The notes under the pieces were generated by a model. It searched no databases, was not told the origin of the DNA, and saw only the letters and a program-made list of their open reading frames with translations. Positions 3,272 through 26,399 of a DNA stretch of 33,854 bases are shown here, piece by piece. The stretch spans positions 1 through 33,854 of the forward strand of contig NIVC01003326.1 of NCBI GenBank assembly GCA_002269645.1. Direction: 5' to 3'. Within the stretch, counting starts at the first letter, position 1. Every line of letters starts with the position of its first letter. The position numbers and the translations under genes are program-made. Source of the stretch: Macrostomum lignano. Its lineage: Eukaryota.

Positions 3272-3344
3272 TAATTTTTAAAGTAGAATCTTTTTTTTCA
3301 TATTTTACATGAATACTTTAGTTGAAAAAAGAGAATTAAAATCA

Positions 3345-4096: not shown

Positions 4097-4282
4097 CCCG
4101 CAGGGGTTTTCCGGTAGGAATTTCAAGTCAAATCCAGTCTATAGACAATGCTGGACTAGACTAGAACTAGAATAGACTAGGCTAGACTAGACATAAACTG
4201 GAGTAGATTAAAAACTAGACTAGATTAGATTTCAAATCCAATTGGATTTGACTTGGAATTCCGACAGGAAAAACCCCGCGGG
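4097..4282. mobile_element. MITE with about 40-bp imperfect TIRs and an internal (CTAGA)n-like tract
   Basis: CCCGCAGGGGTTTTCCGGTAGGAATTTCAAGTCAAATCCA (4097-4136) is inverse to TGGATTTGACTTGGAATTCCGACAGGAAAAACCCCGCGGG (4243-4282). Confidence 0.75.
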
Positions 4283-4492
4283 CAGACCTCGGCGGGAGCC
4301 AATTTTATGAGTGGCGCGAGAGTCAGACGCTGCTGTGTCCCTAAACCAAACTCTAACCTTTTTTGTTTTACTGAATTTTGTAAAAGTAATTGTTTTCTTC
4401 AAGTTGAAAACCAAATGAAAATTCCGGAAGTTGAAACACACGAACCGGTCACTGTGAAAATATATTATTCATATTTAATATTCAGACAAGTG

Positions 4493-5320
4493 GGGTGGGT
4501 TTCACAAACGCGAAATTTCATAACCGCTAAAAGCACTTGCTTTCATAAACGCGAAACTTCACAAACGCGAAACTTCACAACCGCTAACTTTTTTGCAGTC
4601 ACTTTCATAAACGCGAAACTTCACAACCGCGAAACTTCACAACCGCTAAATCACCTACTTTCATAAGCGCTAAATTTCATAAACGCGAAACTTCACAACC
4701 GCTAATTTTTTTGCAGTCACTTTCATAAACGCGAAACTTCACAACCGCGAAACTTCACAACCGCTAAATCACCTACTTTCATAAGCGCTAAATTTCACAA
4801 CCGCGAAACTTCACAACCGCTAAATGTCGTCTACTTTCACAACCGCTAAATGTTATCTACTTTCACAACCGCTAAATGTCATCTACTTTCACAACCGCTA
4901 AATGTCATCTACTTTCACAACCGCTAAATGTCATCTACTTTCACAACCGCTAAATGTCATCTACTTTCACAACCGCTAAATGTTATCTACTTTCACAACC
5001 GCTAAATGTCGTCTACTTTCACAACCGCTAAATGTCATCTACTTTCACAACCGCTAAATGTCGTCTACTTTCACAACCGCTAAATGTCGTCTACTTTCAC
5101 AACCGCTAAATGTCATCTACTTTCACAACCGCTAAATGTTATCTACTTTCACAACCGCTAAATGTCATCTACTTTCACAACCGCTAAATGTCATCTACTT
5201 TCACAACCGCTAAATGTCGTCTACTTTCACAACCGCTAAATGTCGTCTATTTTCACAACCGCTAAATGTCATCTACTTTCACAACTGCGAAACTTTACAA
5301 CGGCCAAATGTCCTTCAAGT
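4493..5320 (+). repeat. Left foldback arm: outer TTTCA(C/T)AA(C/A)CGC modules, then about 18 copies of 26-bp TTTCACAACCGCTAAATGTC(A/G)TCTAC
   Basis: Directly visible; mirror image of 11770-12713. Confidence 0.93.
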
Positions 5321-5509
5321 TATCATTTTTGCAGGTTTCTGCGGTTTATGAATTATTTTTAACACAAATCGTATTGAAAAAACTACACGACACTGCAGGC
5401 TGTACAACGCGGCGCACAGCCCATAGACTGCGGTTATAATTTTTTAAAGGACGTTTTGAAAAAGCTACCTACTTACATTACAAGCCACAACTGATGTGCT
5501 AAGCTAAAC

Positions 5510-6990
5510 CATAGAATTATAGATAATATGGAAGTGAAGTCTTTTAACAAGGGTTTGAAAATTTTTAAATAACCGGGCCCTGAGCTGGCCGACTGTTTTT
5601 TCTTATTCCCTTTGGCTTTGACAAAACTGGGCCGTTGCTTCCCATTCCATAAAAGGGGTATTGAGTGAGGGGCTGAGGGCCAATGAAATGTGGATACTAG
5701 AATATGAGCACTGAGCCGTTGTACATGGGTCCGAAACAACTTTTTAGGGTTTAGGGTTAGGTTATGGGAATATTGTAAAGATAGTGATAACTGCCATTTG
5801 AGTGCAATAAGAAAACTTGGTGTGTAGTTTCAGTCATTCTCACGTCAAGTTAAACTGACAAAGAACGGGTGATGGCTGTATAATGTGCTTGGGGATTCAA
5901 AAAAAACCCTTTCTATAAACAGTTAACTGTATAGCTACTCGCTACCCTCTGCAAAAAGAAACGCGGGACCATGGCGGGGCAGGAGGGGATGCGGGTAAGA
6001 GAAATAAACTGTACAGTTACGAGCTAGCTCGTATATACGCAAGTCTTTGTTGTGTTGGTAAGATATAAGAAAACTTACAGGAGTTGCCAGAGAAAAGAGC
6101 AGCTCTGTTTTTATCATAGCAGGTTTCAGTCACACAAGAGCTTCAAAATCTGCCAGGCTCCTTACAGATTGCAAGCTCTGGTCCAGACGGTACCGTCAAG
6201 CCTCCTCGATTAATCTTTCACAGGAACGTAGAAGGGGCTTCGTTAACGCCTCCTTTATCTTCAACAGCAACCAGCAGTTCGGCACAGGCTCGCTCGACAG
6301 TTTTTTTTGCATTGAAATCGACTTGGCAAACTTGCCTGCGACATAGAAAGTGACGATGTCATCAGCATCTCACAATTCACCCACTGCCTCCAGTTCGCGA
6401 ACGAATTCCTTGACTTCTTCATCTATGCCTCGGGTGCTGCTTGATGATTCCACTGCAAGGTAGGTACTGAATATCCTGAGGCGCAACTCCACTGAACTGC
6501 TTTTACAGATTTTCCAGTCGCGCACGTAGTTTTTTCTACATCAGTAAGATGGCATAGCTGCCAGTCCATATCTGATCTGACTTGATCTCGGCTGCAATCT
6601 TTCCTGTGCCTATCGATTGTGCTCGTCCTCACGTTATGAACATGCCAGGGTGGAACAATGGATCGAACAAAATTGCTGTCTCATTCCACTGCTTGCCTTG
6701 ATTTTGATTTTTTAAACGCTTTTTTGATCAATCATGCTGCAAGTCAACTTTGAAGCCAGCTTCAAAGGCTTTCGCTCTTCAACGTTTACAGATTGACCGA
6801 GGAGGCTCAAGTGTACCGTCCGAACCAGCATTTGTAATCTGTACTGTAAGGAAACCTGATAGATTTTTAAAATAATCAAGAATCAGGAATAAGATTCAAT
6901 GGAAATCCTATGCTCACGTTACTTTCAAGTCGGCCCGGTTATGTAAAGGTCCAAAAAAGCCTTCGCTTCCATATTATCTAGAGTTCTATG
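5510..6990 (-). mobile_element. Non-autonomous P-element-like transposon nested in the MULE
   Basis: TIR CATAGAATTATAGATAATATGGAAGTGAAG versus inverse CATAGAACTCTAGATAATATGGAAGCGAAG; 7-bp TSD GCTAAAC at 5503-5509 and 6991-6997; decayed P-type transposase inside. Confidence 0.85.
6130..6600 (-). pseudogene. Decayed C-terminal fragment of a P-element/THAP9-like transposase
   Basis: Manual translation gives VTFYVAGKFAKS...C..C..LL...KINRGGLTVPS with stops and frameshifts, resembling the YIAGY...RGGLxxPS region of P transposases. Confidence 0.55.
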
Positions 6991-7041
6991 GCTAAACCAT
7001 GATATCTGCGTTTTTAGAGCAGAGCTGCCTATTGGTTCAGC

Positions 7042-7074
7042 CATGGACTTCTATACTAAGTATAGAAGTCCATG
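7042..7074. mobile_element. 33-bp perfect palindromic insertion with 7-bp TSD (ultra-short P-like MITE)
   Basis: CATGGACTTCTATACT-A-AGTATAGAAGTCCATG flanked by GTTCAGC at 7035-7041 and 7075-7081. Confidence 0.75.
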
Positions 7075-8060
7075 GTTCAGCTCAGCTTTATATACATGTA
7101 TGTATTAATAATAATAGAATTTTGTACCTTTTATTTATGGTCCTCTTTTTATTATACAGGCCCATGGCTTCTTAGTCTCCAAGTTAATATTAAATTTTAT
7201 TTTTAGCTACTTAGTTTTCTACAAAACAGCTATATTATAAAATGATTTTTTTCTATAACTCGCTACTAAGCTAACTAAAACTGTATAGCTTATGGCATTA
7301 TACTCTGATTCGACTAGAATCTTATAGAAATTTTAATAGATGATTTCTGACTCACAATTTTATGACCTATGCCGTATGGTATACTTAAGTAGGGACTTCA
7401 GTGAGGGTCCCGTGACCGTGACTTGCCAATATGCTTACATTGAAAAGTAAAGAGGAGAAATAAGAGAGTAGAGACGAAAAATAAGAGCTAGAATATAATA
7501 AAAAAGAGAGTGCAGAGATGAGAGATTAGAGATGAAAGAGCAAAGAAGAGAGGGGAGAAAGGAGAGTCTTGGTCTGGAGACAATGACAGCCAATTTTTCC
7601 AAACAGGGAAAACAAGATATGATATTTCAAAGGTTTCATTGTGGATTTGGAGAGGATTTGAAAGATGAATTCTGGTCATGGGATTATTGAGCTGATGAAT
7701 TTCAGGGAATGGAATTCTGGCAATGGGAGTTCTATCCCTATTCTTCTTCAATGGAGGATTTTCACTTTTACATTTAGTACCAAAAATATAGAAGTGATGT
7801 CAAAAAAGACAAAACTGGGATTGTCTTGCCAACTTAGCAATACAATAATTTTTTAGCAGAGTTGCCCATATGCTATAGTTTAGATTTCTATCTACAAATA
7901 GTAATAGATTTAGAATATTTGGAAGTGTAATAGGATCATATTTTAAGTGGTTGTACATACACTTAGTTGTATTTTTATGAACAATGTAATCAAATGGATA
8001 TTACCTTTCAAAATTTTCCTCTTTCAGTACGCTATCTTCATCAAATAAACGATACCACAA

Positions 8061-10205
8061 ATGCCATTTGAATTTGTTGAAGGCCGTAGGGGCTCAAGGC
8101 TTCTCCTAATAGACCAGCATGCATACAGGTGCAAAAGAACATTGAACGAGAAGCACTATTTTACATGTCGTAATGAAGACTGCTTCGCCAAAGTTATGCT
8201 GAGTGGTGAGACTGCCACACACAGTGGGATTCATAACCATGGTCCAATCCCTGATGAAGAAATTGGAAAGATGAAGTTAAAGCGACGACTAAATGAAGCT
8301 GCGACAAGACAGCCAGAAAAGCGCCTACGAGTAGTTTTTGACGAAATAACAAATGATGAAGCAGCTGGGCCAGATGTTGGATTTCCAGAAGTGGAGCTCC
8401 GCATGTGGCGAGCAAGACGAGCTGTACAGCCTCGAATCCCAACATCTGTTGATGAGGCTGTTGAACTTCTGCATGACGTGGACATGCATCTGCAAAACTG
8501 CGGAGCAGATGGCAAGAAAGTTTTCCAGGGAAGCAGTCAAGTTGACCAGCATGCTGCTGTTTTTTTTGCTCACCCTGAACTCCTGGCTGAGCTTCAAAAT
8601 GCAAACAACATTTTCGTTGATGGCACATTCCGAGTTGTGCCTCGCCTGTTTTTTCAATTAGTGACCATTGGAATCGTTAAACAAGGTTTCTTTTTTCCTT
8701 GCTTTTTTGCGCTACTTACTGGCAAGACAAAGGCCCTCTACCATTTAGTGTGGTCGAAGGTAAAGCAGCTGTTTCCTGCCTTCGAGCCACTGAGTGTCAT
8801 GACGGATTACGAAATTGCGCTGCGAGATTCGCTGCTGGAAGCATTTCCGACATCAACCGCTCATGGATGTTGGTTTCACTACACGCAAGCTGTCCTCACG
8901 AAGCTAAAAAAGCTTGGACTATGGAGTGAAGTGTGCCGCAACACTGACGTTCGAAGCTATGTGAGACTGTTTTTGTGCTTGCCTCTGCTTCCTGCGCAAC
9001 ACCTTGCTGCACTTCATGCTGTCCTGCGACCTGAGACATTTGTTACAACACTTGCCAATGACAAGATGGAAGCACTGCATCGAGCCTACACGTACATCCG
9101 GACCTACTGGCTCGAGAGGGTTGGTGCAGCCATCCTCTCTGTGCACAACTGCGAAGACAGGACCAATAGTAAGCAGGAATCCTACCATAGTCAATGGAGG
9201 ACCTTTGTAGAGACCGCTCATCCCAATATGTGGGATTTCATTGTAGCGCTTTATTCCTCAACGAAAAGAAGCATTTGTTCAACCTATGCAGCTGACCTAA
9301 ATAGGCTAAAACGTGGTGTTCCAATCCGCCGAGCGCGAGGAAAGCGCAGTGTACTAAAAAGTATCCGCATTCGGCAGCAGTATGACCTGTTAAGCAGTGG
9401 ACGGGCAACTCCTCTGGAGGTTCTACGCAATTTGAGTGCATCAGCTGGTCTCCCTCTAGACGACCCACATGATGCTGCTGAACTGGCTGTAGGTCAGTTG
9501 CCAGACGTCGCCCAGCCGGCCCTTGGCGGCGCCGGTGGGCAGCCACAAGACGACGTCGCCCAGCCGGCCCTTGGCGGCGCTGGTGGGCAGCCGCAAGTCA
9601 TCGCCCAGCCGGCCCTTGGCGGTGCTGGTGGGCAGCCGCAAGACGTCGCCCAGCCGGCCCTTGGCGGCGCTGGTGAGCAGCCGCAAGACGTCGCCCAGCC
9701 GGCCCTTGGCGGCGCCGGTGGGCAGCCACAAGACGACGTCGCCCAGCCGGCCCTTGACGGCGCTGGTGGGCAGCCGCAAGTCATCGCCCAGCCGGCCCTT
9801 GGCGGCGCCGGTGGGCAGCCACAAGACGACGTTGCCCAGCCGGCCTTTGACGGCGCTGGTGGGCAGCCGCAAGTCATCGCCCAGCCGGCCCTTGGTGGTG
9901 CTGGTGGGCAGCCGCAAGACGTCGCCCAGCCGGCCCTTGGCGGCGCTGGTGGGCAGCCGCAAGTCATCGCCCAGCCGGCCCTTGGCGGTGCTGGTGGGCA
10001 GCCGCAAGATGACACCGTCGACCAGGGCCTTGGCGGCGGCGAACGACGATGCCCCGTATGTCTAGAAAACTTAGACTCTGCTTCCGCCACATATCCCTGT
10101 GGTCACGTTGTTTGTACCATCTGTTCAGAGAATATTCAGATCAGACTACTGCAGTGCCCTGTGTGTCGAGGCGATTGTGTGATGTTCATTCCTATTTTTT
10201 TCTAG
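8061..10205 (+). CDS. MULE transposase (FLYWCH + DDE) with Gly/Pro/Gln repeat linker and C-terminal C3HC4 RING finger, 714 aa
   Basis: N-terminal YFTC..C...HNH (FLYWCH-like); catalytic VDGTF, MTDYE, GCWFHYTQAV (CxxH), RTNSKQESYH; C-terminal CPVC...CGHVVCTIC...CPVC. Uninterrupted ORF, with an upstream acceptor TTTCCTCTTTCAG near 8027. Confidence 0.95.
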   Translation: MPFEFVEGRRGSRLLLIDQHAYRCKRTLNEKHYFTCRNEDCFAKVMLSGETATHSGIHNHGPIPDEEIGKMKLKRRLNEAATRQPEKRLRVVFDEITNDEAAGPDVGFPEVELRMWRARRAVQPRIPTSVDEAVELLHDVDMHLQNCGADGKKVFQGSSQVDQHAAVFFAHPELLAELQNANNIFVDGTFRVVPRLFFQLVTIGIVKQGFFFPCFFALLTGKTKALYHLVWSKVKQLFPAFEPLSVMTDYEIALRDSLLEAFPTSTAHGCWFHYTQAVLTKLKKLGLWSEVCRNTDVRSYVRLFLCLPLLPAQHLAALHAVLRPETFVTTLANDKMEALHRAYTYIRTYWLERVGAAILSVHNCEDRTNSKQESYHSQWRTFVETAHPNMWDFIVALYSSTKRSICSTYAADLNRLKRGVPIRRARGKRSVLKSIRIRQQYDLLSSGRATPLEVLRNLSASAGLPLDDPHDAAELAVGQLPDVAQPALGGAGGQPQDDVAQPALGGAGGQPQVIAQPALGGAGGQPQDVAQPALGGAGEQPQDVAQPALGGAGGQPQDDVAQPALDGAGGQPQVIAQPALGGAGGQPQDDVAQPAFDGAGGQPQVIAQPALGGAGGQPQDVAQPALGGAGGQPQVIAQPALGGAGGQPQDDTVDQGLGGGERRCPVCLENLDSASATYPCGHVVCTICSENIQIRLLQCPVCRGDCVMFIPIFF
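9504..10035 (+). repeat. In-frame 45/48-bp coding tandem repeat, 11 copies of (D/V)(V/I)AQPALGGAGGQPQ(D)
   Basis: Counted in the 714-aa translation. Confidence 0.95.
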
Positions 10206-11769
10206 CAATGACGTTTCGTAATAGAAAAGGGCCACAGGGCCGCAGGACGTGACCACAGGAATATATGGCGGAAGCAGAGTCTGCATTCAGATTGAACAGA
10301 TTGAAAATAAGAATTAAGTGCAGAAAAGGACGATAGGCTCTCAGCGTAGAAGTTAAAAAGGACGGGGAGAGGTTAGTAATAAGAATTAACAACAAATATG
10401 ATTCGAAGTAACGTAAATATTATTGCGAGCAATAAGCAGCTATCATGTACCCGGTGCATAAATCTGGTTAAGATACAAACGGAGAATTCGTGAGAGTGGC
10501 CTGTGAGACGGCATTGCTAGCCAAAACTTATGAGGGTGGCACCTTGACAAATTCCATAGGGCATAGGAATCCAGTGGCCAGAGAGAAAACTGTGAGCAAT
10601 GTGAATAATCATAATGAACAATACGAGAGAAAATCGCAAGGAAAAAGTACTTCAGACTAGGCCCATAGTCTTATTATCTAATGCCTAATAATGTCCCATT
10701 ATCAAAGTAAATATTATAATAAAATTAGAGTTCGTTCGCATTGTTATAGCATTTATCCTTCTAAAATAGCAGTAACTAGGTTTCTTTTTTAAAGAACGTG
10801 GCATTCGCACTTTTTTCTCAAGTTACAACAAGTTACGGTTCATAAGCTTTCCATCGTTTGTTCTATAAACCGTGTACTCAAGGTGCAAAGCCTCTAAAAG
10901 ATATAGCAGGATTTAAATGTATAATTTAGTGCCCACAAGTTTCCTGCACATTTTTCAGTTTTGTTGTTGCTATCTTGCCGTTTGTCAAAGTTGAATAATA
11001 CAAAAGGTCGAAATCGAAGTGGAAAACCATGGAGCATGGATACTACAACATCATTGAGTACAGTGAAAACTTACAGCAAACAATTTGTCTTTTTCTTTCT
11101 GTTTCCAACACGTGTGAGTGAAGAAAAAGAAACAGTAAAAAAACTGAGACGCTAAGTAGGATAGTACAGTATTATGACGTTGTGAAATTTTCTGTCTCAT
11201 GTGTTGTGACTGCGTTTCAGTATAACGTAAAAAGTGTGAGACATGTGTCCGCAGAGTCATACAACCTCTAGACTCTGGCAGTTTGTACCCGCGTTTCCCC
11301 GCTACCCCATCAATGTAGAGCCGGAACCTGCTATGGCTGGTGAGAATTGAGGAAGGCACAAGGGCCAGGAAAATAAAACAGTACGAGTATGCTCTCTTCC
11401 CGAATGGGAAACAAGTGTTCTTTCATTAAAGACACGGTCAAAAAACCCTCCTCTGTTCCGAGTTCCGAGTCCTAAATCTGTATAATTATATACTGTTTTA
11501 TTATTAATATATTCAGACTACTCTATAATTTCTGTATAATTCCTAAATTTCCGTGTCTTAAGTACTGCCCTGTACTTTACAGTTCAAACATTAGGAAATT
11601 TTGGTCTTATGAAGCCCCCACCGAGAAGACGAATGTATAATAGCTTCATTACATATGCAAAATGTACGAGTATCTGCCTTAACTTAACTGAGAGTAATTA
11701 TTGACGTCACTGTTACAGAACGTAACACCTACCACTCGGTATCTGTGCTCAATTGGCAATGGAACTCTA

Positions 11770-12713
11770 CTATAATAAGAAAGTAGATGACATATTTGGC
11801 GATTGTAAAGTTTCGCGCAGACGACATTTAGCAGTTGTGAAAGTAGATGACATTTAGCGGTTGTGAAAATAGACGACATTTAGCGGTTGTGAAAGTAGAT
11901 GACATTTAGCGGTTGTGAAAATAGACGACATTTAGCGGTTGTGAAAGTAGATGACATTTAGCGGTTGTGAAAGTAGACGACATTTAGCGGTTGTGAAAGT
12001 AGACGACATTTAGCGGTTGTGAAAGTAGATGACATTTAGCGGTTGTGAAAATAGACGACATTTAGCGGTTGTGAAAGTAGATGACATTTAGCGGTTGTGA
12101 AAATAGACGACATTTAGCGGTTGTGAAAGTAGATGACATTTAGCGGTTGTGAAAGTAGACGACATTTAGCGGTTGTGAAAGTAGACGACATTTAGCGGTT
12201 GTGAAAGTAGATGACATTTAGCGGTTGTGAAAGTAGATGACATTTAGCGGTTGCGAAAGTGGACGACATTTAGCGGTTGTGAAAGTAGATGACATTTAGC
12301 GGTTGTGAAAGTAGACGACATTTAGCGGTTGTGAAAGTAGATGACATTTAGCGGTTGTGAAAGTAGATGACATTTAGCGGTTGTGAAAGTAGATGGCATT
12401 TAGCGGTTGTGAAGTTTCGCGTTTGTGAAAGTGACTGCAAAAAAATTAGCGGTTGTGAAGTTTCGCGTTTATGAAATTTAGCGCTTATGAAAGTAGGTGA
12501 TTTAGCGGTTGTGAAGTTTCGCGGTTGTGAAGTTTCGCGTTTATGAAAGTGACTGCAAAAAAGTTAGCGGTTGTGAAGTTTCGCGGTTGTGAAATTTAGC
12601 GCTTATGAAAGTAGGTGATTTAGCGGTTGTGAAGTTTCGCGGTTGTGAAGTTTCGCGTTTATGAAAGTAGGTGATTTAGCGGTTGTGAAATTTCGCGTTT
12701 GTGAAAGCAACCC
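11770..12713 (-). repeat. Right foldback arm of the MULE (about 22-23 copies of the 26-bp unit plus outer modules)
   Basis: GTAGA(T/C)GACATTTAGCGGTTGTGAAA array, the reverse complement of the left arm. Confidence 0.93.
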
Positions 12714-12988
12714 GACAAGTGTACACGGTGCATGCGATAAAAATTTGCTGTAACGCAGAATAACTGGGAAGAAATGATTTGATAAATATTAAATTTTTTA
12801 GTTAGAAAGAATTTAATTTTGGTAGGAAAATAAACCGATTGTTGCAATAAGCATCAGAAAAAAAATCGAACAAGCGAAATACATGTAGCACTTTAAACTG
12901 AATTGTTTCAAAGCTGTCAGAAAATTGGTCGATTTTTAAATAACAAAACGCCCGTTTTTTTCTAATAAAAGTTACATGTACCATCAAT

Positions 12989-13142: not shown

Positions 13143-13460
13143 TCAATTGAGCCGAAAATCAGAATGACTGCAGGCTCCTAGCAGGCACAGGTGGCTGCAA
13201 TGTTCGTTCAGTTTGGCAGAGTTCGACAGAGTCTGCTCAAACTCGTCCGGCAAAACTAGCGGGTCAGCTAGCTGAGGACACGGCAGCCAAGCAAAGTTCT
13301 GATGCAACGCTGGAGGTTGCTTTGCGGTTGCCGAGGCGGATTGCTGTTGCCATGGCAACAGACGGCACAGCAGAGTGAGAAATATTCCGCAGTTGGCGTT
13401 GTTAGCCGAAAGGAATTCGCTGTGAAGCACCGCTCTAAATTGCACCTTACGGCCTGTTAA
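13143..13460 (-). CDS. NUDT18: NUDT18-like Nudix hydrolase, exon 6 (terminal)
   Basis: Acceptor TTTTCAG, phase 0, matching the exon 5 donor; VLHSEF...NCGIFLTLLC resembles the NUDT18 C-terminal region; stop at 13143-13145. Confidence 0.65.
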   Translation of the reverse strand, partial: LTGRKVQFRAVLHSEFLSANNANCGIFLTLLCRLLPWQQQSASATAKQPPALHQNFAWLPCPQLADPLVLPDEFEQTLSNSAKLNEHCSHLCLLGACSHSDFRLN

Positions 13461-13701
13461 CTGAAAATCGAATGAAATATAAAAAATTACGTTAAAATAC
13501 CTGAGCTTAAACAGTAGACGTTTATAGAACAATTTATAAAAAAATGAAGTGGTAGTATGATATAAAGGTCTGAGCCACACTTATTGCTCGGGCGCAGTGC
13601 GCGCCAGCTCGCTGGATGACTCAGCCCCTTATATCACACTACTACTACCAGGAGGTCAGAGTTGCAAGGTGTCTGAGATAAATATATAATTATTTATCCC
13701 C

Positions 13702-13732
<31 letters not shown>

Positions 13733-14090
13733 TGTGTGAGGGTGCTTAAGGGTGAGGGCATGTGTGGGTATTGGCATGTGGAATATTTCGCAGAACACAG
13801 ATTTTTCAGAATTTTTATACTTTTTAAAAGGGAGAGTGCCCTCGCCCTCATGCCCTCACTCATTTTGAAAATCACAAAAATAAGTGAAAAATGACTAAAA
13901 ACAGGTGAAAATGGTCTGAAAACAGCGATTTTTTGTTATTTTCAAATACTTTGAAAAGGTGCAATTTTCACGATTCCAGCTCTAAAACCATGAGAAAAGT
14001 TGGATTCACGGGTCAATTCAATGCAATTTCAGGTATATACAATATGAAAGTGTCATCCAATTTAACGATAGTAAATTTTAAATACATAAA

Positions 14091-14222
14091 ATGGCCTTCA
14101 GTAAACCATTATTTCTAGGTTCTGCATTAGATATTCAGTCAGCTATAACAAAACTACCCCCCATCTTCTTCACTGGAAAATATCCTGGCGAATTTCATAT
14201 TCCTGGGTATTCTTTCGCAGGT
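14091..14222 (+). CDS. Exon 1 of the Polinton PLA2-like (PLA2X)/integrase gene
   Basis: ATG at 14091: MAFSKPLFLGSALDIQSAITKLPPIFFTGKYPGEFHIPGYSFAG, ending in U at the group I 5' splice site. Confidence 0.85.
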
Positions 14223-15059
14223 TACGTTGTGGCCTGAGTGAGGAAGTCAATGTCCTTGTTAGTCATAGAATAAGCACTTGTTAAATTTTCTAAACTAAAA
14301 ATGGAGCAAACAGTTCGAAAAATTCTATACTGAACCAGTTGATGATAAGGTTGGGCATGATCAAATTCTTCATTGATCTTTTCCAAGAAGAGTTAATCAT
14401 TTCACACAAGATTAAAGTTATTCAAATGAGACTCGGCAGACTATATGAAATATTAGCAGAAAATTATTTTGGATTCGAGAAGGTAAAAAAGATAGACCTG
14501 GTTCACGTTGACCGAAAGATTGCATTAGAGCTTAAATCTTCTGATAACACGGACAATTCATCAAGTCGTGAAAGGAATTATCAGAAACTATTAGACTATA
14601 CAAATTCTTATCCCACCTACCAGTTGTATTATGTATGCATCAATAAAACTACAAAGGAACCTAAGAATATTTTACTAGACAATGGAATCACCCTTATACC
14701 AGGAGAATTTGCATTGAAATTTCTTTATGGAGATCAATACAAAAACATTATAACCAACATTAAACAAGTGCTTAATGATAGGCGACACCTTCGAATTGCG
14801 GGAACTCCGTCAACAACAGCCTCAAGTACCACTTCAGTTGAGAAATCTTCTGAAGGAACACAGGTAATTCCTGTTCCCAATGGTAACAAGCTTGAGGACA
14901 TGGTGGAAATCCGCAGCCAAGCTCCTAAGTCCGAACGAAGTTGACAAGGATATGGAGAAGGTTCAGAGACTTAATGGGGGTGGGGCTGAAGGATCTGGTC
15001 AATCCTGATGAAGCCTTAAGATAAAGTACAGCCTCTTTCGAAAGATTGAGGAACAACTG
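14223..15059 (+). ncRNA. Group I intron, IC1-type, 837 nt
   Basis: P1 (CAGGT/GCCTG with U-G pair); P3 (CACCTTC/GGGGGTG); P element AATTGCGGGAAC 14794; P5abc with AGTACC and GAAA loop; Q element AATCCGCAGC 14908; 11-nt receptor CCTAAG/TATGG; R element GTTCAGAGACTTAA 14961; S element AAGATAAAGTAC 15018; P9.0; terminal G 15059. Excision restores the reading frame and the G-P-G motif. Confidence 0.92.
14301..14780 (+). CDS. Intron-encoded PD-(D/E)XK nuclease (restriction-enzyme-like; candidate homing endonuclease), degenerate
   Basis: QMRLGRLYEILA...IDL...IALELKSSDNTDNSSS (E..D..ExK pattern). The likely start ATG at 14301 is out of frame with the 14339 ORF, and TAATGATAG near 14773 is one base out of frame, suggesting frameshifts at both ends. 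Confidence 0.65.
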
Positions 15060-16219
15060 CCTGGTACAAATTTAGACAAAAGACTCAATCCAATTACAGA
15101 CTGGCCTCGGTATGACAGTCTACCAATTAACCCAATAGATTGGACTGCTTACGCTCGTACTATCATGACAAAAGCTATAGAGATGCTGAAAAAACGTCTT
15201 CAACTCCAGAGGAAGCTCTAGCAAAGAAGCATATTGCTGATGAAACAATGATAACTGATTTAGATGCTATTCCAACCAGTGACTTGTCTGTGAAAGAGAG
15301 ACTCATTAGAAATCTAGTAAAGCGTATTATCAAAGCTAAAGTTCGGTTTGGATTAGGCATTCATACTCACAACCCCAACAATTGTACAGACTGTCTAACA
15401 ATTTATGGAAAGGGTCTTAGCTATGAAGATGCTGTGAAGCTGCATAGGGAATACAGAAAACCAAGACTGTTTAGAAAAATGATTCACTATGCAAAAGACA
15501 CAATTTGGCATGCAGATATCATTATCCTACCACCCGAAAGAGGTTACAAATATGCTCTCACTATCATAGATGGTTTTACACGTTACGCCTGGGCAGTTCC
15601 TTTGAAAACAAAGACGGGAGCGGAAGTTGCAGAAGCTTTCCAAAAAGTATTTAAGGAATCAGGAAGACGATCAGAGAGATTTTGTGTAGATGAAGGCAAG
15701 GAGTTTTATAATCAGCATATGTACAAGCTATACTCGTTTTGAAAAGACAACATAAGAAAGAAAGATGAAAATGGGGAGTATATTAACAAGACTTTTTCAA
15801 TTTATGGCGAGTCCAAGAACGCAATGATTGAGAGGTTCAATCGTACTCTCACAAATAAACTCTGGTTTGAATTCGATCTACAAGGAAACCAGAAGTGGCT
15901 CCACATATTGCCAGCTATTGTTGATAAGTACAACACAATCCATTCTGAGATTCTGATAACTCCTTCAGAAGCATCTAAACATCCTGAGCGAGTACCAAAG
16001 CCTTACTTCGAGGTTTCAAATGAGAAACCAAACTTTAAAGTAGGTGACAAAGTTCATATCTATAGATTCAAAGAGCACTTTGAAAAGGGTCGAAAGGGTT
16101 ATTGGAAAATTTCAAAGGTTTTTACGATTAAGAAATTTGTGTACTCAAATCCCATAAATTTTTCAACTAAAAATGAGCGCCTATCGAACAAACTGCAAAC
16201 GGGCGAAAGGTCAGATTGA
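15060..16219 (+). pseudogene. Exon 2: PLA2-like domain fused in frame to a Polinton retroviral-like (rve) integrase; one frameshift (about 15155) and one in-frame TGA (15740)
   Basis: PGTNLDKRL...PINPIDWTAY / YHDKSY...HIAD...KAKVRFGLG, then WHADII, IDGFTRYAWAVPLKTKT, FCVDEGKEF, MIERFNRTL (D,D,E triad). Confidence 0.88.
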
Positions 16220-16433
16220 AACGTCTGATTCACAACTACTAGTTGATAAAGAGGGTGAAGGAATCGGTGATATGATCAGTGGTGTCACAAACTTTTTATC
16301 AAATCATGGAAGTAAAATTGTGAGTGGAACTGATGCCATAGGTAAAACAGCAACAGCAGCTAAAAACATTTTCGACGCAAAGAAAATATACAGTGACATG
16401 TCTAAAGCAGGTGAGGAACTGGAATATATTTAA
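16173..16433 (+). CDS. Small Polinton ORF of unknown function (GEGIGDMISGVTNF...)
   Basis: Short amphipathic ORF between the integrase and the polymerase fragment; true start uncertain. Confidence 0.4.
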   Translation: MSAYRTNCKRAKGQIETSDSQLLVDKEGEGIGDMISGVTNFLSNHGSKIVSGTDAIGKTATAAKNIFDAKKIYSDMSKAGEELEYI

Positions 16434-16572
16434 GAGTGGAGTGAATATTCAATTATTTATCAAGAAGTCAAAAAATGTTAAGCTGACAGTTTTTGCACTA
16501 ATTCTTGAGCAAACAAAGAATGTTATCAAAGTTACCAGTGAATATCAAATGACTCGGGTTGAATAAGGTCAA

Positions 16573-16887
16573 ATGAATGGCTCGATAATTTCCGAAGCTG
16601 TATTCCTGCGGTCAAAGGAGTATGCTTTCAATACAGTTTCAGGAGAGTGTGTTAAGATCAAGGGAGTTGATAAAAGCAGTACAAATATAAAGTTTAAAAC
16701 ATTTAAAAACATACTATTGACAGATTACAAAGAGATTAGAAGAAGCCATGTAAGCATGACTGTAAAATATATAAAATATAGAAATAAAATATATATTCGT
16801 GATATTATGAAACAAACAATGAGTCACTTAAATGATAAAAGATATTATTTGGATCCTATAAGATCTATTCCTTTTCAGCCAATGTAA
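16573..16887 (+). pseudogene. C-terminal fragment of protein-primed family B DNA polymerase
   Basis: MNGSIISEAVFLRSKEY...KIKGV...LNDKRY...IPF matches the Polinton pPolB C-terminal pattern; the exonuclease and palm regions are absent. Confidence 0.82.
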
Positions 16888-19369
16888 TCTCATGGATAAC
16901 ATCTTCGTTTATTTTTTTCTTGCACTGTAGCAACACATTTCTAGTTTCATGCTGTTTACCATCTACGCCTATATCTGTCCTTATAATACTTACAATAATC
17001 ATTGGGATTCTTGAAGAAATCAGTTACGAATTGCTGTCGAAATTCTAGTTTTTATGATTTAGATAGGTTTCTATAATATTCACTCTCTCTTGCGGCAGTG
17101 TGAATTTCGCTAATAGGCACAAATGTTTTTTCCTCAGTTTCTAAAAATTCATAATTCTCTTCAAAGAAGTGCGCGAACCAATTACAATTCTGTATGGATT
17201 CATTAGTGTTCTCAATTACGTTTTCCGATAGATATATTTCGCCTTTTGTTTGTTTGAAAATTTCTAGTAGGTGTTTCATCTCTGCAAACTTATATTTAGT
17301 CTTAAACTCCTCACTTTTCAAATATGTATCGGCCTTGTAAGTGTGTGTCTCAGGATCAATCATTTCGTTATCTGTTGTATATTTGCACGGGTAATTAATA
17401 TAGACAATTCTCCTCTTCTCCGCATCTCCAATATTTTGTCTGAAGTCAGGCTTGTTGTTGCATTCGACTATCAGAGTTGCGTGTAAAACGACATTACACT
17501 GGCTTGAATATAAATTTCTACCATGGTAGCTTGGATAACCCCACCACCAGTTAGTAATTTTATTGATGCATTGTTCAAGACACCGCCTACTTCTTGACTG
17601 ATAACCAACCTCTTTTTATTAATTTGTGCTAGGGCTGGTTGTGGCTTGTCTATTCTTATTGGTGAATTCAAAACATCAGGACTCAGTGGTGCTGCATAAT
17701 CAGATTCTAGAGTTCTAAGAAGTAGGTTGTCCTCAACCCCCTTGCCATTTCCACCAGCGCCATCAAACATTATAAAGTTTTCAAAATTCTTACCCATTAG
17801 AGCTGTAACTATAACGGATTCCCAACTCTTTCTGTTCTCTGGATCTGGATGGATTTGGTTATGCAGATTAACAATGAAGCCATAGTCGTCATCACTCACT
17901 CTAAGTACATCCGAGTAATTATATCCCACCGATTTAGTAACGTAATCTTCATATCTATACTAGCGAAACTCACTTGTAATGAGGTCATATACTCCATCGT
18001 CAAACCCTAGCAAATTCCATTTCATGTCGAATTCAATTTCATTGTTAGTAAACCTCTCTTTGAACAAAGTAGTTACCTGTTTGAGTTTGTTGGCTCCTTG
18101 TATTGAATTTATATTCTTCATTGTGTTCTTTAGTTTCTTTTCAAGTGCTTTTAACTTCTCTTTATCATCAGCCTTCTTAATTGCAATTTCAAGTCTAGTC
18201 TTTCGGTGGTTTAACCCACTGCTAACAAGGTGTGATATTTTAAGAAATATGTCATTTATACTACTTAGTTCTCTCCACTTATCATCATCAAAATAGTAAA
18301 TACCATCGCTATTGTAAATTATATTATTTTTCTTATATTCAAAAACAACGGTTATGTTAACGTCAGTGAAATTATCATCAAGATACTAAATCCTACCATA
18401 ATAATCATTTTGCTTTTCCATTCCTTATATTTACCATAGTTTTCTTCACTAGCCCATTTCTTCAACGTACCGATAGTAAGTCTGTCCTGTGCATCAGCAG
18501 AGCTGGCACTGGTGCTATTCCACACTTTTTTACATGACTCGGAATCGAACTTATCATAATTTACTTTTGACCAATCAGTGAATACTTTGTAAATTTCATC
18601 ACCACTGTCTATGTCGCGGAGTATGAGTGCTACCTTGTACCAAGAATCATAGTCTTGGTTTTTGTGTTGTATTATACTTAACAACCTTGAAACTCCTTCA
18701 CAAGTGGGTGGTGGAACGGTGCTTTTTAGTGCTTGTTTATCGGGTTCTTGGTTTTCTGTTTTATCCTGTGGCTTAATTAATCTATTTATCTCCTCAAGAA
18801 TTACATATGGCATGTCAATTAACCCTTCGGGCTATATGTTTGTATTCCTTCATTTCACCATCGACATAATAGAAACCTGGTGGAGCAAATACTAAAGCCG
18901 GAATATCAAAACCCACACTTTGTTGAATCGTTACTTTTAATCCATCTACCTTGTTAAAGTAAAAGTGGTGACCCTTGTTTGTCTGAACAATCCAATCACA
19001 ATGAGTCATACACAGTTCATTCAACTCAGGGCATAGGTCAGCATTATCAATATCGATTATGGTTATACTTGAATTTCGAGTATCTATCCAAATCATGTTG
19101 TCTACCTCTGATCGAAATGGTGGGGAGGTTGAATTCCTATCTGCTTTGGTTGGCATACCTGACGGTATTTTTTTTGTTTTACTATTCCATGTTATACTGC
19201 AATTTCCGAATGTAAAATTACGTTCTCCATAGAGATTAATTAGTTTATCGTACGATTTTGTTTGTTTTAAATTTGTCAATCTTGGTGGTGGTGGTGCATC
19301 ATGGTTTTGAAGTGGATCCTGTACGATCACAGGAGAGACACTTAAATCGTTTTGATTTTTTCCTTCCAT
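16865..19369 (-). pseudogene. Prim-pol + PriCT-2 + D5-like SF3 helicase gene, fragmented by frameshifts and stops
   Basis: IIDID and QTNKGHHFYF (prim-pol motifs, 18815-19423 ORF); YDSWYKVA...DWSK..YDKF...W...TIGTLKKWA (PriCT-2); FDGAGGNGKG Walker A and RLVISQE Walker B (17471-17929). Confidence 0.85.
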
Positions 19370-19385
19370 TTTATTAAAAATAAAT

Positions 19386-19753
19386 TCAACGATATATTTT
19401 ATCGGTTTTAATGTACTTCTCAAAGGTTATGGGGAGTTTGAAAATGTTCGATTTCAGCATGACGAAAAATTCATCATTCCTTATGTGCTGTCTCGAAATC
19501 AATGCCCATTTATCAACATGTGCAAGATATACTCTGAATGAAAACAAATATGGGGGACATTTACAATCGGTGTGTTTTAATATTTCAGCTTTATATTCAT
19601 CGTAAGCTTTATCAATTTCTGCAATTAGTCGAGACTTTCGAGTGTGGGTTTTAATTTGAGAAAATGATATAATAGAATCATAGTATTTTTTGGTAGAGCA
19701 TTTCGTACACTTGGGTTATTAGCTTCCATTTTTTCTAGGAAAAATTTAGCCAT
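19386..19753 (-). pseudogene. Small unknown Polinton ORF (about 120 aa), one apparent frameshift
   Basis: Manual translation MAKFFLEKMEANNPSVRNALPK / YYDSIISF...KYIKTDKIYR*, directly upstream of the primase gene. Confidence 0.35.
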
Positions 19754-19851
19754 GTAGTTTTCATTTTTCAAGTCACAAAGTATTTTTTGAATATTTGGAA
19801 ACTAGCATGACCTCTTTGCTTACATTTTGACTCAGAGTTGTTTTTTGGCAG

Positions 19852-20112
19852 AGTAGGCAAACTTCACTCGATTGCCCCGAAGGGTCGCAGACATTCTGAT
19901 TGCATTGACACAGGAATTCGGGTTCTATTCGCGCTACACATAAACAAGTTTGCATTGCAACAATATGGTCGGCTATAGCAAAGCAAGTAGGCAAACTTCA
20001 CTCGATCGCCCCGAAGGGTCGCAGACACAGTCTGATGACTAACACAGGAATTCGGGCTTCTATTCGCGCTACACACAAACAAGCTCACACCGCAACAATA
20101 TGGCCAGCTATT
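19852..20112. repeat. Diverged 134-bp tandem duplication inside the Polinton
   Basis: AGTAGGCAAACTTCACTCGAT(T/C)GCCCCGAAGGGTCGCAGACA starts at 19852 and 19986. Confidence 0.85.
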
Positions 20113-21112
20113 GTCTGACCCCCGTAGACTTGCCACTTCAATAGATACTGTAGAGGTTCTACCCCCGCTCACCCACTCAACATTTCAATCTGACCAATAC
20201 TCGCGACCAAATCATCCGACCAAAAAAGTTTTAGCTTTGGTTTTGGTTTTGGATTTTGGCAACCAATTCTTTCTCTCCAGTTCGTCTATTTTTCTGTTAC
20301 TAAAAATAGACAAAAATGACGAACATTACACATGCATACAATCTGAATGAATGGCAAACAGAAGACCCAGTAAAAGTATCGTGCAGAAGATGGGTGGTAG
20401 TTTTGTTATAGCTGACTGAATATCTAAAGCATTTCCTAGAAATAATGGTTTACTGAAGGCCATTTTATGTATTTAAAATTTACTATCGTTAAATTGGATG
20501 ACACTTTCATATTGTATATACCTGAAATTGCATTGAATTGACCCGTGAATCCAACTTTTCTCATGGTTTTAGAGCTGGAATCGTGAAAATTGCACCTTTT
20601 CAAAATATTTGAAAAACACAAAAATCGCTGTTTTCAGACCATTTTCACCTGTTTTTAGTCATTTTTCACTTATTTTTGTGATTTTAAAAATGAGTGAGGG
20701 CATGAGGGCGAGGGCGCCCTCCTTTTTTAAAAGTATAAAAATTCTGAAAAATCTGTGTTCTGCGAAATATTCCACATGCCAATGCCCACACATGCCCTCA
20801 CCCTCAACACCCTCACACAATATATATATATATATATTATATATTTATCTCAGACACCTTGCAACTCTGACCTCCTGGTAGTAGTAGTGTGATATAAGGG
20901 GCTGAGTCATCCAGCGAGCTGGCGCGCACTGCGCCCGAGCAATAAGTGTGGCTCAGACCTTTATATCATACTACTACTAATTGAATATTTTTGTCTTTTA
21001 GTGCCTTCGGATGACAATGTCAGTGCTAATTGACTTGTCTAAAAATTCGATATTGACAAGCGGTGGTCTAAAATGCTAAAAAATCATTAAGAAACTATAG
21101 TTAGTACGTCAC

Positions 21113-21392
21113 CTTTTCAGTCAGAGTGCCGGCAAGGACCCCGAAGCTACCCGGGTGCTGCATTCGCACCACAGGCAGCCGGGCACCGGCGCCATCTGGC
21201 AGCACTCGACAGAGCACCTTCGACACAGACGAATCCGTATCGCTGCTGACAGCGCCACCCGGACAATGTATGAACAGCCGCACGTGACACGCCGACCAGC
21301 TGACTGCTAACGGCAGACGCGGAATCGATGGCTTCTTCCGGCGAGTGTCCAAATGATTAGCCAATACTAACATTGGTATTATGTCTGCTGAA
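21113..21392 (-). CDS. NUDT18: NUDT18-like exon 5
   Basis: SADIIPMLVLA...PRLP...CHVRL...VL...RLPV resembles the NUDT18 C-terminal domain; phases fit the neighbouring exons; donor AAG|GTGACG. Confidence 0.7.
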
Positions 21393-21613
21393 CTGAATTT
21401 GGTTAGTTTATTAGCTATGCAGAAGTAATGTAAGATATTTGAAGTGTGTGACATTTTTAAAGACAAAATTTGATAACTCACCGAAGTTCAATGCGCGCTC
21501 TGAAATAATTTAATAGTTACATGTAACTTCTAAACATACTTTCTTCGTGCACAATTTAAAGAATGCATACTACTTCTAGTAGACATGTAATTATACATTC
21601 TTAATCAACTTAC

Positions 21614-21672
21614 CCAATAACGTCTTTCAACGGGATCCACTTGGCGCATAGAGACTCTTCGTCCGGTTTGTT
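21614..21672 (-). CDS. NUDT18: NUDT18-like exon 4
   Basis: CTGCAG|NKPDEESLCAKWIPLKDVI-GG|GTAAGT, similar to the ADAESLQAAW motif. Confidence 0.8.
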
Positions 21673-22626
21673 CTGCAGTTGAAATTGCGGTTGTATGATA
21701 TAAATAATTTATAAGTATCTCAGACAGCATCGTGATAGTGCTCATATTTGCTGACAGACTGGTTAAGATTGAGATAGCATAAAATAAGATTAAGATAGAC
21801 TGAAAATCGACAAAACGCCGAGCGAGTGCCCGTCCTCTGCATTGGAGCGCCTGCAGTCAAAAGCAGCGCCTAAGAGTCAGTTTGAGGCGTTTTATTGTTT
21901 GCGACTCTGAAACAACACTGGGGTGATGCAAGTGACTTTGGTGCACTTCTGTAATGACTCTGGAGCCGTAGATTCGTATCCTAGGAGTCTAAAAGCGCGT
22001 CTGCATCAATTTATGAATTATAGAATCGCATTTCGCATTTACATGTATAGCAACTCTAATTTAGTCTTACTTTTTCTTACTAGTCTTACTTAGTTTTTTG
22101 CGAATCATTTTACGATTCTACAACCATGCGCTCGTGGCTCAACAGTCGCCTCTACAGTCATTTGAGTCGGTAAAAAAGTCACAAGAGTCGTCAGAGGCAC
22201 TCACTAGTGAGTTGTTTGCAATGACTCTTTTGCGATTCTTGTCACGGTAACGTTTTCAAAGGGTCGCTTAGACGCTTAGACGAATCAGACCTGTTGCTAT
22301 TCGAGCGAGTCTGTCAGCGTCCAAGTGTTACGCTCGTAGCTCGTATAAAACAACGCCAACTTCTAAAGGTCAAGGCCAAAACTAACCTCTAATCAACAAC
22401 CTCTACCAAAGCAAAGCTAGTCTCCAACCTCAAGCTTCGAAATTTAATAGGTCGTCTGACCAGTGCAGTGTGGTTGGCGAACGCAAAATATAATTCCTTG
22501 TTAAATTAACTACAAGAAATCTATCAGAGTCAACATGCAAATCAAGTTTTTAACTTAAGTATATATACACTGAAGATGGTTTTGTGGCCAAATAATTGAC
22601 TAGAAGAAAAAAAACAGCAAACTTGC

Positions 22627-22761
22627 CTTCAACTTTCCGCCGACAATTTCGCCAAGAAAGTTGACGCGAATCCAATGACAGTCGCGGCATTCGATGCTGA
22701 CTAATAGGCGTGGCTCGAATTGCAGTCCAACCTCTTCGAGGAATTCGCGCTTGACCGCGTC
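22627..22761 (-). CDS. NUDT18: NUDT18-like exon 3 (second half of the Nudix box)
   Basis: DAVKREFLEEVGLQFEPRLLVSIECRDCHWIRVNFLGEIVGGKLK; acceptor TTTTCTAG; non-canonical donor AAG|GCAAGT. Confidence 0.88.
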
Positions 22762-23466: not shown

Positions 23467-23633
23467 TTCCAATGACTCATTAAGTTCGAGTCTGCCAGCC
23501 GGCAGGTACCAGAGGCCTCGGGCAGATGGTTTGGCCTCCTGGATCATTGCAACGTCGCGGTTGGCAGAGAATACTATGCCGGAAACGATCACAGCTTTGC
23601 TGCGACCCAGCTTTGGAATGTCGTGGTCTAGAC
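23467..23633 (-). CDS. NUDT18: NUDT18-like exon 2 (first half of the Nudix box)
   Basis: VAMIQEAKPSARGLWYLPAGRLELNESLE|GTAAGC closely resembles NUDT18 LIQEAK..RGSWYLPAGRME. Confidence 0.9.
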
Positions 23634-23746
23634 CTGACCGTGAAAATGTGACACTCGTTAAATTACAGTATAATTTTCTTAAAATTTTTAGCAGTAATTG
23701 TTTAACAAATGTAGTATGCTTGAAATACAAGGTAGCTATGTAAATT

Positions 23747-26340: not shown

Positions 26341-26399
26341 TATGTAAATTAATTGTAATCTAAAGTACAATCAAGGTTATCAAGTAAATGTTGAATTAC

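Follow-up and report, generated by a model that had tools for sequence, protein, structure and literature searches.

The stretch of DNA analyzed here, hereafter the window, is the complete contig NIVC01003326.1 (33,854 bp) of the Macrostomum lignano assembly GCA_002269645.1. Its minus strand carries a six-exon NUDT18-like gene of the flatworm, and the last intron of this gene contains a whole element of the Maverick/Polinton type plus little else. Within the element, on the plus strand, a gene for a phospholipase A2 (PLA2)-like domain fused to an rve integrase is interrupted by an 837-nt group I intron, which in turn encloses a gene for an Eco47II-like nuclease (Table 1).

A group I intron in the PLA2-integrase gene

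Among the Rfam covariance models, RF00028 (Intron_gpI) matched the window at 14711–15050 on the plus strand over its full length, i.e., model positions 1–253 of 253, with 83.5 bits (E 4.8e-20) against a gathering score of 50. This was the sole Rfam match within the whole window. An initial annotation of this DNA had placed a group I intron at 14223–15059 and had suggested the RF00028 search of this interval. The full-length match and the covariation described below confirm that the interval is a genuine group I intron. Its 5′ 490 nt lie outside the RF00028 match because the inserted gene sits there.

The integrase part of the gene retrieved 28 proteins in a homologue search. In P0005, encoded on ENA contig L002, a PF08398 parvovirus-type PLA2 domain and an integrase core are joined without interruption, and the intron boundaries were obtained by tblastn of this intron-less protein against the window and twelve related loci. 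In all copies with the intron, the alignment halts at P0005 residue 58 and restarts at residue 59, within the motif Y-x-(F/Y/L)-x-G|P-G-T-x-L; the break hence falls at the G|PG of the PLA2 calcium loop in 12/12 intron-bearing copies. In the window residue 58 corresponds to position 14222, and the restart at residue 59 was seen in copies with an unbroken exon 2. The intron begins at 14223, right behind the U of a U-G pair, and ends with a G at 15059. From the ATG at 14091 the frame runs through 44 whole codons before the intron, i.e., the insertion lies between codons.

We compared the two exons separately with intact homologues, leaving the exons unjoined and the frames unmended. The window exons align to P0005 over YSFAG|PGTNLD and HD..Y, so that both the YxGxG calcium loop and the HD..Y motif are present; on their own, these short exons gave no Pfam PLA2 match. 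It had been claimed that excision of the 837 nt would adjoin EFHIPGYSFAG to PGTNLDKRL, in the calcium-loop motif of a PLA2-like domain. The uninterrupted homologues are continuous across this boundary, and the G|PG break together with the PF08398 domain of P0005 places it in this loop.

The stretches that the initial annotation had designated P, Q, R and S all lie where it had put them on the RF00028 consensus, with P (AATTGCGGGAA; in RNA, as P/P4, AAUUGCGGGAA), Q (AATCCGCAGC; RNA AAUCCGCAGCC), R (GTTCAGAGACT; RNA GUUCAGAGACU) and S (AAGATA.AGT; RNA AAGAUA.AGU) aligning to the model. The fold was analyzed on a ten-sequence alignment of the core (A3). RNAalifold recovered P4–P6 with the P5abc three-way junction, P6a/b, P7 and P8 from this alignment; P3, which forms a pseudoknot, and P9 were added before pairs were counted. 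Standard pairs occupy 94.3% of 661 cells over the ten copies, compared with 80.7 ± 0.9% after shuffling and only 38–45% when the partners were slid by 1–3 columns. Changes on both sides were found in 31 of 70 pairs, and none of 500 shuffles attained any of five covariation measures. The check for covariation across copies, which had been named beforehand, thus came out positive: in the ten copies the whole P3–P8 core including the P3/P7 pseudoknot is supported by covariation, which shows that the RNA fold was under selection during divergence. P3 pairs as CACCTTC/GGGGGTG (helix 1), in the form first described. The P5a/b/c junction shows compensatory changes, and the L5b GAAA loop and its CCUAAG/UAUGG 11-nt receptor, both listed in the initial annotation, are invariant in the ten copies.

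The peripheral helices were likewise found. P1, described as exon CAGGT paired with an internal guide sequence (IGS) GCCTG with U-G at the splice site, is formed by 14218–14222 with 14232–14236. Exon and IGS co-vary, with CAGGU/GCCUG in six copies and UUAGGU/GCCUAA in four, and 10/10 copies have the U of the 5′ splice-site U-G pair. The proposed P2 hairpin was located at about 14240–14257; its stems vary among copies yet stay complementary (AGGA/UCCU, AGGAG/CUCCU, GAUAG/CUAUU, CUAUA/UAUAG, CGUA/UACG and GGAUA/UAUCU). For P2.1, the proposed GTCAT/ATGAT does pair as the base of the stem, but the real stem is far longer, with 15–22 bp that are complementary in 8/8 full-length copies without conservation of sequence. 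The P2.1 duplex of the window reaches −19.5 kcal/mol in RNAduplex compared with −5.7 ± 2.4 kcal/mol for shuffles, and over the eight full-length copies energies range from −10 to −21 kcal/mol compared with −3 to −8 kcal/mol. The terminal G, also claimed before, is present in 9/9 copies that have the 3′ end, the window among them. One P9 hairpin was seen near the 3′ end of the intron, with neither P9.1 nor P9.2. Overall, the pattern resembles that of a functional ribozyme family. With P5abc and its tetraloop-receptor contact, P2 and P2.1, the intron is an ordinary RF00028 member with IC1-like features, and assignment to the IC1 subgroup is plausible. From its structure, the covariation and the intron-less homologues we infer that the intron would be self-splicing.

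The intron-encoded nuclease and same-site introns in relatives

The P2.1 loop, about 445–480 nt in length and about 470 nt in the window, contains an open reading frame (ORF) that had been missing from the initial annotation. In the window it matches RE_Eco47II (PF09553) with E 5.6e-7 and 29.8 bits, above the Pfam cut-off of 25.9. Twelve homologues with intact N-termini, 41–64% identical, come from other intron copies, and D53, E64 and K66 of the D...E-x-K motif are invariant in 14/14 sequences. In locus L047 the ORF is stop-free over 233 aa. An AlphaFold model of the intact homologue P0029 is confident for residues 1–166 (pLDDT mostly 86–96), and residues 167–233 are predicted to be disordered (pLDDT below 50). 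Foldseek ranked EcoO109I (E 2.3e-4), a type II restriction enzyme, first for this model, ahead of other PD-(D/E)xK nucleases, with the DdmD nuclease domain, Hef/XPF and BamHI among the top matches; at the sequence level, the nuclease profile found no relative in the PDB. The 3′ end of the ORF (window 14760–14944) continues through the P2.1 3′ strand and P3–P6. This tail is conserved at the nucleotide level and looks like a read-through imposed by the RNA rather than a protein domain.

Relatives of the nuclease with 31–38% identity are free-standing and common in freshwater giant-virus metagenome-assembled genomes (MAGs) and lake metagenomes (L004–L046), and two further ones, about 25% identical, stand free on L002. 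An Rfam scan of 30 metagenome loci with nuclease relatives, several of them giant-virus MAGs, found no group I intron. The two Eco47II-like ORFs on L002 are at 2774–3130 (+) and 7909–8466 (−) and, together with a RING-ankyrin ORF, lie between and beyond the two PLA2-integrase 5′ ends of this contig.

Introns at the same site were found in L003, L047, L048/L049, L050, L051, L052, L053, L054 and L055, and moreover in the 3′ fragment L001, on the minus strand of L002 and in the paralogous flatworm locus L056 (NIVC01000184.1). The eleven copies from outside the flatworm come from at least nine other samples. RF00028 scores are 61–89 bits in eight other loci (L002, L003, L047, L048, L049, L052, L053 and L054) and 88.2 bits in L056. 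In nearly all copies (L001, L047–L055), automatic gene calling broke up the interrupted PLA2-integrase gene. The calls for the integrase begin inside the 3′ end of the intron or later, and P0001 starts with residues translated from P9; such split calls are a caution for genome annotation.

Intron-less sister alleles, for which a search had been suggested, do exist. The plus-strand copy on L002 and the IMG/VR contigs L057 and L060 read LGPGT or TGPGT without interruption, and ten IMG/VR viral contigs are continuous across the G|PG motif. In L057 and L060 the PLA2 motif is fused to the integrase as in P0005; the other IMG/VR contigs have a separate PLA2 gene, with CGPGT in seven of them. The minus-strand intron on L002 is without any ORF, and its P2 runs nearly straight into P3. 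Three allele types hence coexist, i.e., intron-less, with an ORF-less intron and, in most copies, with an ORF-bearing intron, which is the pattern expected of a homing-endonuclease cycle. On L002 itself, two PLA2-integrase 5′ ends lie head to head within 1–4294, the minus-strand copy with the ORF-less intron and the plus-strand copy intron-less, with 65% identity between their exons 1.

The Gly-Pro codons at the insertion site spell GGNCC in every copy (window 14220–14222/15060–15061), and the intron splits this sequence. GGNCC is what we take to be the recognition site of Eco47II-type enzymes, and its presence at the Gly-Pro codons may be the reason why an Eco47II-like family settled there. 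The Eco47II-like ORF is most likely the homing endonuclease of this intron, as judged from its position, family and allele pattern.

Restriction-fold enzymes of the PD-(D/E)xK type are known as homing endonucleases, i.e., I-Ssp6803I and I-Bth0305I, which are likewise found within or associated with group I introns, in that case bacterial ones (PMC3424549). These belong to other families (PF11645, Vsr-like), in contrast to the PF09553 enzyme with EcoO109I-like fold described here. In the literature that we searched, with subscription journals outside its coverage, no intron endonuclease of the Eco47II family was described.

PLA2-integrase products of the intron-bearing relatives are only about 33–40% to 76% identical. 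The identity of the intron core rises with that of the exons (Spearman 0.51, p 0.0014), which fits long co-descent plus some exchange.

The carrier element and its flatworm locus

The element that carries the intron measures 7431 bp and has terminal inverted repeats (TIRs) of about 600–626 bp that are 92–99% complementary; the left TIR takes in the first 83 nt of the PLA2-integrase frame. A target site duplication (TSD) had been claimed. Hexamers do flank the element, but they are imperfect, with AAATGA on the left and AATTGA on the right (5/6). The integrase matches rve (PF00665) in Pfam with E 1.8e-10. Exon 2 shares 76% identity with its intact counterpart in L047 (377 aa) and is broken in the window by one frameshift and one in-frame stop. 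The primase-helicase remnants match PriCT_2 (1.2e-12) and Prim-Pol (0.0039) in Pfam and primase/helicase families in PHROG (2.7e-11). They show at least two frame changes, a count that is a lower bound. A tblastn search of the window primase-helicase ORFs against all fetched loci yielded no comparator, and a PDB search with the helicase-like ORF found no match. Next to the right TIR, still inside the element, 19852–20111 holds a pair of direct repeats (84–98% identity) whose period is about 134 bp.

PolB found no match among ten element ORFs in Pfam, six of which were also compared with PHROGs, and genes for capsid, ATPase and protease are absent from the window element. L047 and L050 both have a double-jelly-roll (DJR) capsid gene after the integrase, and L050 shows a weak match to an adenain-like protease (Peptidase_C5). 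The claim of a Polinton carrier stands as far as the TIRs, the rve integrase and the PLA2-like part are concerned. Strictly defined, however, a Polinton has both pPolB and an rve integrase (PMC5499653). We therefore rejected the strict label for an element that has no pPolB. The element rather fits among the 'group 2 Maverick-Polintons', which combine PrimPol-helicase replication genes with a phospholipase (bioRxiv 10.64898/2026.06.19.733378), and PLA2 domains were already known in Polintons and adintoviruses (PMC3671162; PMC8502044).

With group 2 Maverick-Polintons and adintoviruses it has in common an animal host, TIRs, an rve integrase and a parvovirus-type PLA2 (PMC8502044; PMC3671162; bioRxiv 10.64898/2026.06.19.733378). 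As in the window element, a PrimPol/SF3-helicase replaces pPolB in group 2 Maverick-Polintons, and the DJR capsid and adenain-like protease occur in the relatives analyzed here. Unlike in group 2 Maverick-Polintons and adintoviruses, the PLA2 here is joined to the integrase at the N-terminus of the latter and not to a pX-like domain, and a group I intron interrupts the gene. The window copy, moreover, lacks the whole morphogenetic module that those elements have. It is a decayed fossil.

On the host side, a minus-strand NUDIX-like exon best matches human NUDT18 structures, and the next exon completes the Nudix box, which spans the 23467/22761 exon junction. The joined host peptide was 100% identical to a 364-aa M. 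lignano protein in an exhaustive search, and the host exons match annotated M. lignano proteins at 91–100% identity. It had been claimed that the element lies in a spliceosomal intron of NUDT18, and exons of the NUDT18-like gene indeed lie on both sides of it. The host gene is on the opposite strand, and the ribozyme is therefore antisense to the host pre-mRNA, in agreement with the initial annotation.

The same insertion, flanks included, is present on the paralogous contig L056 at about 97% identity, where the intron is 99.4% identical to that of the window. We therefore conclude that the insertion is older than the duplication of the region and that an assembly artefact is excluded. The two loci differ by an indel, with 333 bp at window 16157–16490 facing 787 bp at L056 13007–13794 (reverse); L056 retains about 450 bp more sequence after the integrase. 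Window 4493–12713 (8.2 kb) is absent from L056. It includes at 8061–10205 an intact 714-aa ORF (GC about 62%) with FLYWCH, MULE-transposase and RING domains, and has the appearance of a MULE-type transposon insertion by which the duplicated loci differ.

Several other features surround the gene. The first NUDT18-like intron contains, on the strand opposite to the gene, an uninterrupted 797-aa reverse transcriptase ORF at 23930–26323 (+) (RVT_1, E 3e-28, GC about 62%), probably a young retrotransposon without long terminal repeats (non-LTR). A tandem array at 1–484 has a unit of roughly 39 bp and gives a ladder of offset matches to L056; another at 12502–12731, just upstream of the last exon of the host gene, consists of 16/24-nt units (TTAGCGGTTGTGAAGT...). 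An ORF at 604–1053 (+) has a weak AIG1/GIMAP-like GTPase match. The call for the neighbour gene in L056, at 26779–30071, is a 499-aa product that unusually combines AIG1 and Hint domains.

Table 1. Features of the window, with coordinates on contig NIVC01003326.1.
Feature	Position	Strand	Details
Group I intron	14223–15059	+	837 nt, phase 0; RF00028, homologue boundaries, covariation
Exon 1, PLA2-integrase gene	14091–14222	+	44 codons, ending EFHIPGYSFAG; tblastn with P0005
Exon 2, PLA2-integrase gene	15060–16219	+	rest of PLA2-like domain (PGTNLDKRL...HD..Y) fused to rve integrase; Pfam rve, tblastn
Internal guide sequence GCCUG	14232–14236	+	P1 with exon bases 14218–14222
P2 hairpin	14240–14257	+	alignment A4
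P2.1	14262–14783	+	5′ strand about 14262–14283, 3′ strand about 14760–14783; encloses nuclease gene
Ribozyme core	14785–15059	+	P3, P4, P5, P5abc, P6/6a/6b, P7, P8, P9 with GAAA loop, terminal G
Eco47II-like PD-(D/E)xK nuclease gene, putative homing endonuclease	14301–14944	+	Pfam PF09553
Maverick/Polinton-type element	13548–20978		7431 bp, 5′-AG...CT-3′ termini; internally reduced, decayed
Left TIR	13548–14173	+	arms 13548–13690, 13714–13751, 13746–13933, 13930–14173; alignment A1
Right TIR	20381–20978	−	pairs with left arms
Left flank AAATGA, putative 6-bp TSD	13542–13547		5/6 match to right flank
Right flank AATTGA, putative TSD	20979–20984		5/6 match to left flank
Truncated homologue of L047 143-aa protein (after integrase)	16173–16433	+	tblastn 69% identity, residues 1–86 of 143
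Primase-helicase remnants (Prim-Pol, PriCT-2, SF3/D5-type P-loop)	17052–19423	−	at least 3 frame segments
Last exon, NUDT18-like gene	13146–13463	−	tblastn P0041 (PAA88524.1) residues 259–364, 99% identity
Penultimate exon, NUDT18-like gene	21107–21400	−	tblastn P0041
Other NUDT18-like exons	21613–21681, 22627–22761, 23467–23634, 26398–26517	−	tblastn P0041

Origin of the intron and comparison with known systems

We propose that 14223–15059 is very probably a mobile-type group I intron with an Eco47II-like homing nuclease that belongs to a Maverick/Polinton-type virus lineage and became fossilised in the flatworm. In the virus, the PLA2-integrase precursor RNA would remove the intron by two guanosine-initiated transesterifications and thereby restore the frame, as its structure suggests. 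In a mixed infection or between resident copies, the nuclease would cleave alleles without the intron at the Gly-Pro site or close to it, and repair would copy the intron into the cut allele; the allele pattern and the nuclease family point to these steps. The virus, or a derivative mobilised by integrase in trans, would have integrated into the flatworm germ line, in the last NUDT18-like intron, prior to the duplication of the locus, and the copy would then have decayed. The order of these events is our reconstruction.

A number of observations weigh against this proposal. In the window, 67 of 68 modelled pairs are standard. The non-standard one is located in the catalytic core and shared with L056, and catalysis by the window copy may therefore be impaired; P7 (helix 11) pairs and co-varies in relatives, and the flatworm copies have one non-standard core pair. 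The nuclease gene of the window contains at least one frameshift, and the similarity of the enzyme to Eco47II is modest. L050 and L051 have cores that align but are under the Rfam gathering score because the P9 hairpin is absent, so some members of the family may be degenerate. Splicing at 14222/15060 is, for every copy, a predicted event. With only a moderate correlation (0.51) between intron and exon identity, vertical descent and homing are not told apart among close relatives, and an animal host is demonstrated for the flatworm copies only.

Other origins of the sequence were considered. A spliceosomal nature of the 837 nt, or a chance likeness of some unrelated insertion to a group I intron, is extremely improbable. 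Introns of the ordinary spliceosomal kind do exist in the host genome, AG is followed by GT at 14221–14222 and AG dinucleotides occur soon after 15059. However, the nearest GT...AG would remove GPGTNL from the calcium loop, whereas the group I boundaries reproduce the intron-less homologues exactly, and chance would have to account for a full-length covariance match of E 4.8e-20, 31 compensatory pairs and an IGS that co-varies with the exon. The spliceosomal GT-AG reading was hence rejected for its loss of conserved calcium-loop residues. Contamination with a food diatom, a protist or a free virus, or a mis-assembly, is very improbable as well. M. lignano cultures are fed diatoms, and relatives of the element occur in aquatic metagenomes, but NUDT18-like exons lie on both sides of the element, its TIRs are flanked by a 5/6 duplication and NIVC01000184.1 has the same insertion and flanks. 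This second contig rules out a chimeric assembly and led us to reject contamination, which the initial annotation had also thought unlikely. We regard it as highly doubtful that the intron was gained only after integration, from ribosomal DNA (rDNA), the mitochondrion or another resident intron, and is unconnected to the virus lineage. No support for such a gain was found. Eleven same-site copies from at least nine other samples, including L047 and L050 with intact integrase and capsid genes, and an intron core that tends to diverge along with the exons, speak against it; given the same-site introns in distant relatives, we rejected it.

Two further alternatives accept the intron and its lineage but question its activity. 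The whole family could be a dead relic in which no copy splices and the interrupted gene is non-functional, to which the decay of the window copy and the loss of P9 with sub-threshold Rfam scores in L050 and L051 would correspond. This is unlikely, as compensatory substitutions from P1 to P9 indicate selection on the RNA fold, and in L047 both the nuclease ORF (233 aa) and integrase exon 2 (377 aa) are stop-free. Moreover, integration of the element implies that an integrase was produced, whether from the PLA2-integrase gene or in trans. Some probability, if a low one, attaches to the ORF being a maturase-like, passenger or defence/restriction-type gene in the loop and not a homing endonuclease. 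Its free-standing relatives (25–38% identical) in giant-virus MAGs, lake metagenomes and L002 have no group I intron nearby, and a homing endonuclease of the Eco47II family is described nowhere in the literature searched. Yet free-standing endonuclease relatives are reportedly what the Bonocora–Shub model of intron invasion leads one to expect. The position in a peripheral loop, the invariant D...E-x-K, the restriction-enzyme fold, the coexistence of three allele types and the known PD-(D/E)xK homing endonucleases (PMC3424549) also argue for homing.

The proposed mobile viral intron resembles several known systems. Its P3–P9 core, P/Q/R/S, P5abc, L5b GAAA loop, 11-nt CCUAAG/UAUGG receptor in P6a, P2 and P2.1, U-G pair and terminal G are common to the Tetrahymena-type IC1 rDNA introns (RF00028). 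Unlike these, it interrupts a protein-coding gene, in a virus-like element that resides in an animal genome, has a nuclease gene in P2.1 and ends in a short 3′ part with a single P9 hairpin. Phage T4, in td, nrdB and sunY, and other phages have mobile group I introns with intron-encoded homing endonucleases (reviews cited in PMC11296320). T4-type introns likewise occupy a highly conserved site of a viral protein gene, carry the endonuclease ORF in a peripheral loop and are polymorphic for presence and absence. The present intron, in contrast, belongs to a eukaryotic virus lineage and to another ribozyme subgroup, its carrier integrates into the host chromosome, and its nuclease is an Eco47II-like PD-(D/E)xK enzyme, whereas the phage endonucleases are GIY-YIG or HNH. 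Chloroviruses and other giant viruses have group I introns in protein genes as well, i.e., also in genes of the RNA polymerase II (pol II) type in a eukaryotic double-stranded DNA (dsDNA) virus. Unlike the element described here, these viruses are large, non-integrating and algal or protist, with no animal host or endogenous copy. To our knowledge, nuclear group I introns occur only in protist and fungal rDNA, and the animal group I introns that we know of come only from mitochondria of non-bilaterians.

The initial annotation had known of no description of a group I intron in a Polinton/Maverick. For animal elements this holds, i.e., our literature search, with subscription journals outside its coverage, found no report of a group I intron in an animal Maverick/Polinton or in a bilaterian nuclear genome. 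For protist Polinton-like viruses (PLVs), however, RF00028 matches were published in 2025, in Rhodomonas lacustris cluster C3, Paulinella micropora and Desmodesmus armatus (PMC12220804). Those introns, too, are found in small integrating dsDNA viruses that are often endogenous, but they measure 309–376 nt and have no reported endonuclease, compared with 770–837 nt and a nuclease ORF here (PMC12220804). The Rhodomonas PLV intron interrupts a small gene (about 50 aa) that lies upstream of the one for the capsid, in contrast to the PLA2-integrase gene, and the hosts are protists, in contrast to a bilaterian animal genome (PMC12220804). As far as our literature search shows, the present intron is the first of its kind that we can find in a bilaterian nuclear genome.

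The significance is tempered by the window copy being a fossil, by splicing being a prediction and by the restriction of the demonstrated animal host to the flatworm copies. We put forward only tentatively that living animal Maverick/Polinton-type viruses may carry a mobile intron that self-splices from a pol II transcript in animal cells, and that its Eco47II-like enzyme, which would be a class of homing endonuclease not recognised before, may target the wobble-tolerant GGNCC of the invariant Gly-Pro codons in the PLA2 calcium loop and spread the intron between virus genomes. If this is true, such viruses would be a route of catalytic introns into bilaterian nuclear genomes.

The locus thus holds a structurally sound group I intron in a bilaterian nuclear genome, brought there by a virus-like element. 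With it, animal Maverick-Polintons join phages, giant viruses and protist Polinton-like viruses as known carriers of group I introns. The lineage of these elements offers a complete homing-cycle series of intron-less, ORF-less and ORF-bearing alleles, and the Eco47II family is indicated as a new source of intron homing endonucleases. Moreover, the intron offers a natural setting in which to ask if a group I ribozyme is functional within the mRNA of an animal cell.

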